This document shows, in pieces, positions 55,193 to 59,400 of a DNA stretch of 64,000 bases. The number at the start of each line of letters is the position of its first letter. Position 1 is the first letter of the stretch. The notes beneath the pieces were generated by a model, which worked only from the letters and a program-made list of their open reading frames with translations, had not been told where the DNA came from and searched no databases. Source of the DNA: Oikopleura dioica. Lineage: Eukaryota; Animalia; Chordata. The translations under genes and the position numbers were made by a program. Location: contig OU015566.1 in the NCBI GenBank assembly GCA_907165135.1, positions 7,316,001-7,380,000 on the forward strand, given 5' to 3'.

Positions 55193-56342
55193 TCAAAGTT
55201 TTATTTCCCGCGGTTTTGTTGGTCCGAGGACAACTGCAACTTTTTTCGCGTTTGCTTCGTAGCAGCTACAATAATTATAAAGTCAAGCGTCAAAAAGAGA
55301 ATAGAACATACCTTTTATCGTTGAGATAGTTGTACGTCGCCTCCAAATTCGAGGGCTGATCATTTTCAAGCTCCGGTTGCTTCAAGATTTCGTAAAGATT
55401 CGCGACAATTTCCAGCAAGGTAAACTGCTTTCTCCAGTTATCCAAGGCTTTCAGCGATACTTTGCCGCTTGCGAAGATATTTGGATGCGAAATTGACGGA
55501 GAAAAACGCACGGTTGGAGCAACATCGGGATATTCTTCGAGAATTTTATAAAGGAAAATTTCTAGCGCTTACGTTTTCCATATGAAATGACGACAGAGTA
55601 CATTCCATTCTCCCAAGGAGACCCTGTCGGTCCAGGAAGCCCGAGGAGGACTGTAGAATCGTTCTCTTTTCTAGCCTTTACTTTGCCATCTGTGATTTTA
55701 TAAATTGCATCAACTTCATCTGCTAAGACGTGCTTTTTTTAAGGTTAAGAAAGTTATTTCACCCACTTCCTTGTTTTTAGACCCAGAACACCAAACATAT
55801 TTGGAATCAGTGGAGAAAATCTAGAATTTTGACGGTTTTAGTTTTTCGAAATTCACTTCCGGTTACGATTCTAGAGCCGGAAATTCACGAAATTTATAAG
55901 AAAAGCATGACCTATCAAATTGAAACTTACAACAAGTCCAGTAATTTATGACCGAAATCGAGTCCAACTCCTGTCAAAAACCGCCGGTAAACGACCGGTA
56001 AAAATTGAAAATTTTCTCATTAAATCATGCTTTTTTCATAGTTTTACCGGTCAGTTTAACCGCGGTTGGGACTGTTTCGTCTTATTAATTGAAAATGAGA
56101 TGACTGGAAATCTTCTGCGCATCAATTTGATACATCGCACTTTACCCTTACTCCAAAATTTTGCCTACTTCCGGCTCTAGAATCGCGACCGGAAGTGATT
56201 TTCGAAAAACTAAAACCGTCAAGTTTCTAGATCTTTTCCACTGATTCGAAATATGTATGATGTTCTGGGTCTAAAAACGAGGAAGTGGGTGAAATAACTT
56301 CCTTAACCTTAAAAAAAGCACGTCTAAACGATCAGCGACCAT
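55193..56342 (-). CDS. Ubiquitin-conjugating enzyme E2 variant (catalytic Cys absent)
   Basis: GPTGSPWENGMY, YPDVAPTVRF, HPNIFASGKVSL; exon 1 interrupted by the 55727-56324 MITE. Confidence 0.8.
55727..56324. mobile_element. PIF/Harbinger-like (Tourist-type) MITE in E2-variant exon 1
   Basis: ~160 bp TIRs starting GACGTGCTTTTTTTAAGG; 3 bp TSD TAA (55724-55726, 56325-56327). Confidence 0.88.
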
Positions 56343-56462
56343 TCTGATTATGACAAAGGTTTATTTTAAAACTTGTTCGTGACAGTAAGTGTGGGTTTTT
56401 GAAATTCGCAAATTTGGAATGTGAATGAGCTAGGGGCAGTGAATAAATGTGTTTTGGTGAAC

Positions 56463-59400
56463 TTATGATTCAGCAGTGACATTGGCGACGTTGGTAAAAG
56501 GGGTGCGTTCCTTCTCGCCGTGCTCTTCTGCTCGTTTGGCGACCTCCTCCGGGTCGTTTTCCATGAGGACCAGTTTGGTACAGTCATGGGTCTTGTAGAT
56601 GCCGATCAAGCGGCTGCAAAGACCAAACATTTGATTTCGCAGCGAGATGATGACGAACTGCGCGTTTTTAGTTCGGTCCTAAGTGAACGAATTTATTATT
56701 CTCTTCCTTGATTTCTGAAAAACGTACCTTGATGTAATTCGCCACAATTGAGACGTTTTTAATATCAAGCGCGGCATCGATCTCGTCCATGACGTAGAGA
56801 GGCGTTGGTTTGTAATGATGGAGAGCGAATACCAACGATAGGGACGAGAGGGTTTTTTCTCCACCGGAAAGGTTCATGATCGTCTTCCAACTCTTTTTAG
56901 GAGGACGGACGGTGAAAACGACGCCTTCTTCGAATGGAGCAAGGGTGTTAACAAGCTTGAAAACGAGTAAGTTTTTCGAAATTCAAGTAAAAAGGATGTA
57001 CCTCAAGTTCAGCATCACCTCCCATGGTGATCATCTGGTACATTTGCTTGACCTTTGCCGTAATGATCTCAAAGCCCTTTGTAAACTCTTAACAATAAAA
57101 TATATAAACGGCAATATTTTTTGCGTAGTTACCATCTCGTCGCATTTTCATGAGATCGTTTCGCATCTCTCGCTTTTTATTCCTCACATCGTTGATTTCA
57201 TTGAACTCGTCTCGTCTAGCCGTGTAGACCTCATTCTTATCGCGGTACTCTTTCATAGCGCTGAGATTCGGCCGCGCTAGAATAAGATAAATAAGTGGAG
57301 CGATAAATGGAACTTACATTCGTCAAGAGCCTTTTTAGTTTTCGAAGCTTGCTCGGAAACGGCATTTGTGTCGATTTCGGCGAGTTCTTCGTCGGGAATT
57401 GTTGGAATCGTAAGGTCCTCATCCTTTTCGCCAGTCGAAGTGAGCTTTAAATGCTTCAAGTTCTCAGTGGACTCCTTTATTTTCGTCTCGTAATGAACCA
57501 GCTTTGACTGGATATCATTCCGTTGCGCTAGAAAGCAGTTACAGATGAAAAAATTAACAGTTTTCTACCTTGGATCTTTTTCAAGTCAGTGATCTTCGTC
57601 TCAATCGCCTTTTCGGAGTCAGCAACTTTGGCATCGATCTCTTTCTCAGTTTCAAGCGCGGCTCCAAGATGATCTTCTTCAATTCCAACAAGATCGTCTT
57701 TCATTTCTGCGTATCCAGCAGCAAGCTCGTCGACTTCTTTCGCGATCTCTTCCAGCCTGTTAGCTTTCTCTTCCTTTTCTTCTTTGAGTGTTTGAAGATT
57801 ATCCTCAGCCTAGGAAAGGATACAAATCAGTCAGTAAGTTCTCTGAAATACCGTTTTCTGTTTTCGACTAGCTGTTTTGAGATCGTTAGCGAGCTTCAAG
57901 AGCTTCTTTTTTCCGTCTTTGATGGCATCTTTTGTCTTTTGCATCATCTTCTTGATGCCCTCGACTTTTCCTTTGCCCATCGCCGTAATTTGTTTGTTGA
58001 TTTCTTCTACTTCTTCTTGGACAGATTCCGCGGAAGCCTTGAATACATTCAGAACGAAGTTATCAGTCAGAAAGTTACCTTTGTGGCACCCCACTCGCAC
58101 TCAGCATCCTTCACGGCATCTTGCAACTCATGAAGACGGCCAGACTCTGGTGTTGCATCCTTTACTCGCTTTTGCTGATCCTTGATGCTTTTTGTCACCA
58201 TCTCGATCTTTTTCAAAGCTGTATCGTACGCCGCACTGAGCTGCTGGAGCTCTGACTGTAAAATTAGAGTTAGAAGTGATAATCCGACAGTTTATTTACC
58301 TTATTCTTGGCGATTTCTTTCGTCGTGCGAGCGATGAAGCCGTTTGCATCGCGAATCTTTGAATCAAGATCTCGAAGTTCTTGTCGGAGATCATTCAAAG
58401 CTGTGTTCATTCCTTGAATCTCCTCTTCTGAAATCGTCTCCTTGCGAACATTAATCTGTGGCTTCTCTCCCATCGCTCCGGATTGCTTTCTGCTACCGCC
58501 ACCAGTCATCGCACCGTGTGGCTCAACAAGAACACCGTCGAGGGAAACGGCTCGCTGGCGAGGTCCACAGTGGAACGCAAATTTCTCGGCTTCTTTTGAA
58601 TCTCTTGCCACGAGAGTATTACCACACGCTTGGAAGAAGCAAGCCATCAAATCTTCTCTATCGCAGCGGATTTGATCGACGAGTCGTGGGCCGGGAAGGT
58701 TGAACTGGCTTGCTGGGACGAAAGGTTTAACCTTGTCGAGGGCGAAGAAGCTTACCGCCCCGACTCTGTCTCTCTTTATGTATTCCAAGATTTTCGTAGC
58801 ATCTGCAGCTCGCTCGACAACGATGTATTCCATATTGCAAGAAGAGGAGAGCGCAACATCATATCGCTGGTCGATACCACCAAGGTCCCCGAGTCGGCCG
58901 ACAACACCAGGAACTTTTCCGGTTTTCTTCAAGTTCATGACGTACTCCTGCACCTTTCCTCGGCTTCGTCCACCGCCTTCTTCTGCCTGAGCGTCAGCCA
59001 GCTTCGAGCTGAGTTTTTCAATCTCGGATTGAATATTTGGCCGCTGATTCTTCATCTGCTCTACTTCTACTTGTCGCTCGCGCACGGCTTGTTCCATTTC
59101 TGGGATGCTGCTCTCAAGTTGCTCTTTCTTCTCCGTGTTGTCAGCGACAGTCTTTTCGGCGGCCTTGATCGATTCATGCATTTCATGCAGTTTATTCTTC
59201 TCACGATCATATTTTGCAGTGTACTCGTCGAGTACGGCTTTTTCCTGGTCGAGGATTTGCTTCTTTTCGTTGACGGAGCTAAAAATGATTGAAAAACGTG
59301 CATTCGGGGACTTAAATACTTTTGAATTTCCAGAAGCTTCTTTTCCAAAGGAGCCTTTTGCTTTCGCAGATCCTTCGTTTTAGCTTCAACTTCCTCGATC

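Follow-up and report, generated by a model that had tools for sequence, protein, structure and literature searches.

A palindromic MITE within a conserved coding exon of Oikopleura dioica, probably a presence/absence insertion allele

The window analysed here is a stretch of 64,000 nucleotides from Oikopleura dioica OKI2018_I69 (contig OU015566.1, positions 7,316,001 to 7,380,000). The genome searched comprised 64.28 Mb in 19 contigs, and the contig holding the window is 14,533,022 bp long. On the minus strand of the window lies a gene for a UBC9-like E2 variant, in which codons 6 and 7 are separated by a MITE of 598 bp (Table 1). Exon 2 of this gene matched Pfam UQ_con (E 2.6e-13), its closest solved structures were those of UBC9, and the gene is single-copy in the genome. 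The catalytic-Cys position after HPN reads TCG (Ser), and Ser was present in all homologues from other lineages, which points to a conserved E2 variant and to neither an active E2 nor a decaying copy. The public protein CAG5105234.1 (Oidioi.mRNA.OKI2018_I69.chr1.g1947.t1.cds [Oikopleura dioica], 108 aa) was identical exon by exon, covering exon 1b from an internal Met, exon 2 and exon 3. This identity confirms the introns of 38 and 46 nt, and it agrees with an earlier statement, in a preliminary description of the locus, that all other exons are open. The public protein begins at Met45 (MYSVV...) and is without the 607-nt intron considered below. A Ser (TCT) occupies the catalytic-Cys position in a RAD6/UBE2A-like E2 gene too (L024:1228-2080, G000:C1:3672291 region). 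In that gene, the intron after ...DVSSIL holds a different palindromic element of about 370 bp, with ends ATGGCTGTTGATTTCGAG....

The ATG is preceded on the same strand, at a distance of 120 nt, by the end of an SMC4-like gene, as revealed by a match to the C-terminus of SMC4 in the PDB (E 7.6e-4). The 120 nt in between (56343-56462) contain a block, ...ATTTATTCACTGCCCCT...TCACATTCCA..., that has been kept across diverged Oikopleura lineages, and an AG located 1 nt upstream of the ATG is conserved across lineages. Block and AG fit what would be expected where two operon genes meet, with signals for polyadenylation and trans-splicing. The UBC9-like gene looks like the second gene of an operon-like pair, downstream of SMC4, with the AG as a candidate trans-splice acceptor; here we presume that what is generally known of Oikopleura operons holds for this pair.

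Table 1 Features of the interrupted UBC9-like gene and its surroundings (positions within the window; a slash marks the proposed cut).
Feature	Position	Strand	Remarks
MITE, palindromic, termini GACGTGC...GCACGTC	55727..56324		arms, TSD, family copies
TIR arm 1	55727..55895		170-nt arms, 90% complementary
TIR arm 2	56156..56324		170-nt arms, 90% complementary
TSD copy 1, plus strand TAA; read on the coding strand as TTA (Leu6)	56325..56327
TSD copy 2	55724..55726
Exon 1a: ATG and codons 2-6 (MVADRL)	56325..56342	-
Exon 1b: codons 7-56 and base 1 of a split Gln codon	55573..55723	-
Intron 1, 38 nt, GT-AG	55535..55572	-	confirmed by public protein
Exon 2: UQ_con core, HPN, Ser replacing catalytic Cys	55312..55534	-
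Intron 2, 46 nt, GT-AG	55266..55311	-
Exon 3 and TGA stop	55193..55265	-
Proposed donor GT, context ATC/GTTTAGAC	56328..56329	-	-3.0 bits, 45th percentile of all GTs (rough self-trained model)
Proposed acceptor AG: last TSD base and host G of the Ala7 codon	55723..55724	-	-2.8 bits, 65th percentile of all AGs (rough self-trained model)
SMC4-like gene, 3' end, stop codon 56465-56463	56463..56642	-	PDB SMC4 C-terminus match

The coding strand opens with ATG (56342-56340), followed by GTC GCT GAT CGT TTA, and the MITE sits directly behind this TTA between two perfect copies of the TSD. The element is short and bears TIRs, as class II MITEs do, and it is non-coding, with stops in all frames. Read without splicing, the message reaches a stop inside the element after 23 codons. 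An Rfam scan of the 64-kb window gave no match. The transcript segment was predicted to fold into a single hairpin of ~300 bp (-340.6 kcal/mol; shuffles -146 ± 8, z -25), the base of which lies 4-5 nt from the proposed GT and AG, with both sites partly paired in the fold. What the preliminary description had stated about the sequence, namely a TIR element with a 3-bp TSD within a coding exon and a premature stop inside it, checked out against the letters at the site throughout.

Uninterrupted ORFs were recovered by a word search with exon 1b, the ORFs being called on environmental contigs. One of them, P0016 from ENA, was identical to exon 1a plus exon 1b in 56/56 residues, without interruption, and it had the same three-codon read-through into intron 1. 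Three others (P0013, P0017 and P0018) were also uninterrupted and matched in 53-55/56 residues (96-98%). A further 11 ORFs, from more distant lineages, were 86-90% identical, and all of them start MVADRL[A/S]DEVDAIYKITDGKVKARKENDST. Four JGI metagenome contigs from other lineages, found with an IUPAC pattern of the N-terminus, showed a clean 601-nt gap relative to the window, equal to the element plus one TSD copy. These uninterrupted wild alleles prove the reconstruction of the empty site, and they make the ATG at 56342 the native start. The empty site MVADRLADE, previously deduced from the interrupted copy, has thus been seen directly in other individuals and lineages. R5 and L6 were invariant in every homologue recovered, and the N-terminus of the UBC9-like protein appears to be under strong constraint.

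The insertion is confined to the animal that was sequenced or to its population, with other haplotypes of the lineage lacking it, and it is therefore young. The element differs by 8% from the nearest copy and its two arms are mismatched at 10%; the insertion need not be very recent, and it may have reached fixation locally in Okinawa. A search by the uninterrupted N-terminus can recover uninterrupted alleles only, so an allele frequency cannot be given. Apart from the insertion, the allele is undamaged, its exons being identical or nearly so to those of wild haplotypes, which is what either continued function or a young age would lead one to expect. The sequenced animal had a heterozygosity of about 3.6% (PMC8008620).

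The element belongs to a family with at least 40 full-length copies in the genome, at 70-92% identity. Its 20-nt terminus was found 171 times in the genome, compared to once for a control pattern, corresponding to roughly 90 elements. The TSD was 3 bp long and perfect in 35/35 complete copies, but it was of 17 kinds, with TAA/TTA in only 4/35. The symmetrised target logo was R-C / W-N-W / G-Y, the family termini were GACGYGC, and no match to the DDE_Tnp_4 transposase (PF13359) was found at E <= 0.001 in the whole assembly. The earlier assignment to PIF/Harbinger, on the strength of a TWA-type TSD, is therefore unsupported. The Tourist-like MITEs of PIF/Harbinger are similar in their 3-bp TSD, and the TAA/TTA at the present copy resembles theirs by chance; the varied WNW TSDs, the GACGYGC termini and the missing DDE_Tnp_4 match set the family apart from them.

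A G followed the TSD in 60% of the sites, and for this reason AG came directly after 22 of the 70 element ends (31%), about five times the compositional expectation of ~6%. The proposal that the TSD supplies the acceptor AG survives in altered form, as an effect of the target preference of the family, and loses its other half, the targeting of TTA. Reconstructed empty sites of 34 other copies had open frames with a median of 81 codons, versus 108 codons at random genomic positions (Mann-Whitney p = 3e-4). Since the other copies avoid open reading frames, the family behaves neither like a TTA-targeting nor like an introner family, and the family-level rationale put forward earlier, that of a TTA-targeting family tolerated in exons, is wrong.

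We read the locus as a recent presence/absence insertion allele of a non-autonomous, palindromic cut-and-paste element, and not as an established intron, with a probability of about 0.6. An almost fully palindromic, non-autonomous element would have inserted between codons 6 and 7 in the Okinawa lineage. In the transcript, it would fold into the ~300-bp hairpin, with 4-5 nt between the hairpin base and the proposed sites, and normal protein from the insertion allele would be lost or reduced. Should the element be removed from the RNA, the expected routes would be weak cryptic splicing or an SOS-type excision, directed by the hairpin and imprecise. Either route would produce a mixture of isoforms, in which the 56330/55722 junction would at best be one in-frame isoform among several. 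The MITE insertion in a conserved coding exon is genuine, but intron birth is at most a candidate reading. Since the lineage also holds uninterrupted alleles, such a birth, suggested earlier, could have gone no further than a polymorphic stage. As for the fate of the RNA, no useful removal, ending in NMD or in an N-truncated product from Met45, is tentatively about as probable as hairpin-triggered excision, and neither is more likely than not; the proposed GT-AG junction as the main product is much less probable, and a small share of the probability falls to other fates.

SOS-type excision is possible, although doubtful. SOS splicing is set off when the inverted repeats of a DNA transposon within an exon pair with each other; the transposon is then cut out imprecisely and independently of the spliceosome, within the repeats or close to them, and AKAP17A, CAAP1 and RTCB are required (Zhao et al., Nature 2025, PMC12779559). 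It has been shown in C. elegans and in human cells, and every exonic insertion tested in C. elegans was excised, with an efficiency of 90-100% (PMC12779559). At the present locus, arm pairing would recruit the three factors, and cuts at multiple positions in or near the element ends would leave small indels, so that an in-frame fraction of the products would partly rescue the gene. Judged by its letters, the locus has every sequence-level feature of an SOS substrate, being an exonic DNA transposon with base-pairing inverted repeats and premature stops. Homologues of all three core factors were found above the Pfam curated cut-offs: AKAP-17A RBD (PF25015, 129.8 bits, G000:C5:10771373-10772059), CAAP1 (PF15335, 41.1 bits, C1:15195633-15195818) and RtcB (PF01139, 360.8 bits, C2:4189849-4191311). 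The hairpin and these homologues make SOS-type excision at least as likely as spliceosomal splicing, and its non-GT-AG junctions would be invisible to hint-based annotation. The genome that carries the three homologues is very reduced. However, the presence of homologues does not show activity, and SOS splicing is not known from tunicates. RtcB is required for tRNA splicing anyway. The whole 598-bp element forms one predicted hairpin here, whereas Tc1 has 54-nt terminal repeats around a transposase gene; with arms so much longer, the dsRNA could be edited or diced instead. Indels would also be less likely to be tolerated at this site, in the invariant N-terminal helix. The demonstrated cases are those in C. 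elegans and human cells only, and the present locus is a candidate.

A nascent spliceosomal intron, as suggested in the preliminary description, is unlikely. It would require that U1/U2AF use C/GTTTAG (56329) and TCTTAG/C (55723) and remove 607 nt efficiently to give the main product; the protein would then be shorter by two residues, the insertion would be tolerated, and its fixation as an intron could follow. A GT-AG pair with canonical dinucleotides does bracket the MITE, and removal of 56329-55723 would give MVADPDEVDAIYK. The predicted product, MVADPDEV..., is in frame, free of stops and 6 nt shorter than the empty site, as had been claimed. So close an in-frame pair, with both sites at most 6 nt from the element, was found for 2% of simulated insertion positions, a suggestive but post hoc value that could reflect survival of a splice-compatible insertion. 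The hairpin would bring donor and acceptor together, T was present at donor +3 in about 17% of the inferred O. dioica donors, TAG acceptors are common, and the target preference of the family often supplies the AG.

The sites themselves argue against efficient splicing. They were scored with a rough donor/acceptor model, self-trained by mixture EM on about 200 kb of genome with ~74 effective short introns, which gave a G/GTAAG donor and a T-rich-YAG acceptor as consensus. On this rough model, the proposed donor (-3.0 bits, 45th percentile of all GT dinucleotides) and acceptor (-2.8 bits, 65th percentile of all AGs) were no better than random GT and AG, while the two introns of the gene itself reached the 82nd-99th and 90th-92nd percentiles. 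The donor has C at -1 and is without G at +5, the acceptor is preceded by an A-run and not by pyrimidines, and both sites are partly paired at the stem base. Among 26 in-frame, stop-free GT-AG combinations around the MITE, the proposed pair ranked 4th by summed score, and none was good. The product would lose R5 and L6, with R-L-A replaced by P at the start of the probable first helix, as placed by a weak match in the alignment to RLAQE of UBC9. The length of 607 nt is atypical compared to the O. dioica median of 49 nt (PMC8008620).

Two other ways of removing the element were considered. Exact restoration of the wild-type mRNA would need TT-GT, TT-TC, TA-CT, AG-TT, GA-TA or AC-AG ends; it was not adopted, because none of these is canonical. 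In-frame GA-AG and GC-AG options exist, but they rely on a poor internal acceptor.

For the public gene model, AUGUSTUS was given intron hints derived from RNA-seq of the same culture (PMC8008620). The model starts at Met45 and ignores the 56330/55722 junction, which speaks indirectly against that junction as an intron of the gene. The evidence is indirect, as an empty allele would yield reads with gaps of a non-canonical kind, which the hints ignore. The annotation would miss the junction too if the culture RNA came from empty alleles, or if the gene was weakly expressed.

Cryptic spliceosomal removal of transposons from mutant pre-mRNAs is known for Tc1 in C. elegans and for Ds/dSpm in maize. 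Those cases resemble the present locus in having weak GT and AG sites in or beside the element ends and partly in-frame products, although here removal is a candidate only.

It is very unlikely that the element belongs to a specialised introner family, evolved to be spliced through a TSD-made AG or through an internal GT/AG pair. The internal pair, with GT at base 4 and AG 7 nt from the end, would always leave a scar of 12 nt, and a terminal GA with the internal AG would leave one of 9 nt, both in frame anywhere. The excess of AG after the element ends agrees with such a family, and the nearest sister copy (L002, 92% identical) also interrupts an open frame, of 167 codons. However, the internal sites scored only -5.5 and -6.6 bits, below background on the rough model, neither Pfam nor homology supported the L002 frame as coding, and the empty sites of the 34 other copies were poorer in open frames than random positions. 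Introner elements are said to have been described in Micromonas and Aureococcus by Huff et al. in 2016. The introners of later surveys are similar to the present insertion in being short TIR elements with a 3-bp TSD in coding exons, with a splice dinucleotide in the TSD region (PMC9860276, PMC12130899, PMC11282704). They differ in that their families are overwhelmingly spliced introns in genes and carry a good splice site, unlike the present family, which avoids open frames and has weak sites. The main texts of the introner surveys PMC9860276 and PMC12130899 make no mention of Oikopleura.

A closer comparison is offered by another larvacean, Fritillaria borealis, with its MITE-derived non-canonical introns (Henriet et al. 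2019, as summarised in PMC11282704 and PMC13326754). According to these summaries, MITEs are located in coding sequence there as well, TIR pairing joins the intron ends, and TSD-like repeats are found at the junctions. The same summaries describe introns that are fixed and abundant, with AG-AC or AG-AT ends and a modified U2 system. In contrast, the present insertion is absent from other haplotypes of its lineage, and to restore the message exactly, ends such as AC-AG or GA-TA would be needed. Introns with such ends are not known from O. dioica.

An assembly artefact, with the element misplaced in the exon by a long-read assembly, is practically negligible: the assembly is Nanopore-based and from one heterozygous animal (PMC8008620), but this copy, like 34 others, ends exactly and has a TSD that is perfect over its 3 bp, and its flanks join precisely into the empty-site sequence seen elsewhere.

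On the letters alone, the locus is an ordinary insertion polymorphism. The ancestral introns of Oikopleura dioica have for the most part been replaced by new ones. Introns born from transposons have been documented in algae, in fungi and in the larvacean Fritillaria. The present locus provides a natural insertion allele in a conserved exon, the matching empty allele of which is known from the wild. With a carrier, empty alleles and homologues of the three SOS factors, it permits a cheap and clean test of either route in a tunicate; SOS splicing was described only in 2025 (PMC12779559). We consider it improbable, if worth the test, that exonic palindromic MITE alleles are removed from O. dioica mRNAs, by weak sites at the hairpin base or by SOS-type excision, as a first step of intron birth. 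If they are, exonic MITEs could persist as polymorphisms and serve as raw material for massive lineage-specific intron gain.

Several other copies of the family deserve mention. Of the 34 other copies, only the L002 copy (L002:1501-2103, G000:C1:3993903-3994505; TSD AAT/ATT) looks exonic. The open frame it interrupts is LamG-like by eye (...FEGCVKDLKV...); this frame had no Pfam match, and a word search with it returned only a short environmental ORF that stops short of the site. On the downstream side of this element, at a distance of 9 nt, is CTCTTCAG, which resembles a strong acceptor. At G000:C1:13821571-13823509, two inverted family termini are 1.9 kb apart, compared to the usual distance of about 0.6 kb; the pair might enclose an autonomous partner, or else be a composite or a relative of greater length. 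At each of L011, L029 and L003, two family copies were located 0.3-1.3 kb apart, which suggests local hopping or insertion hot spots.
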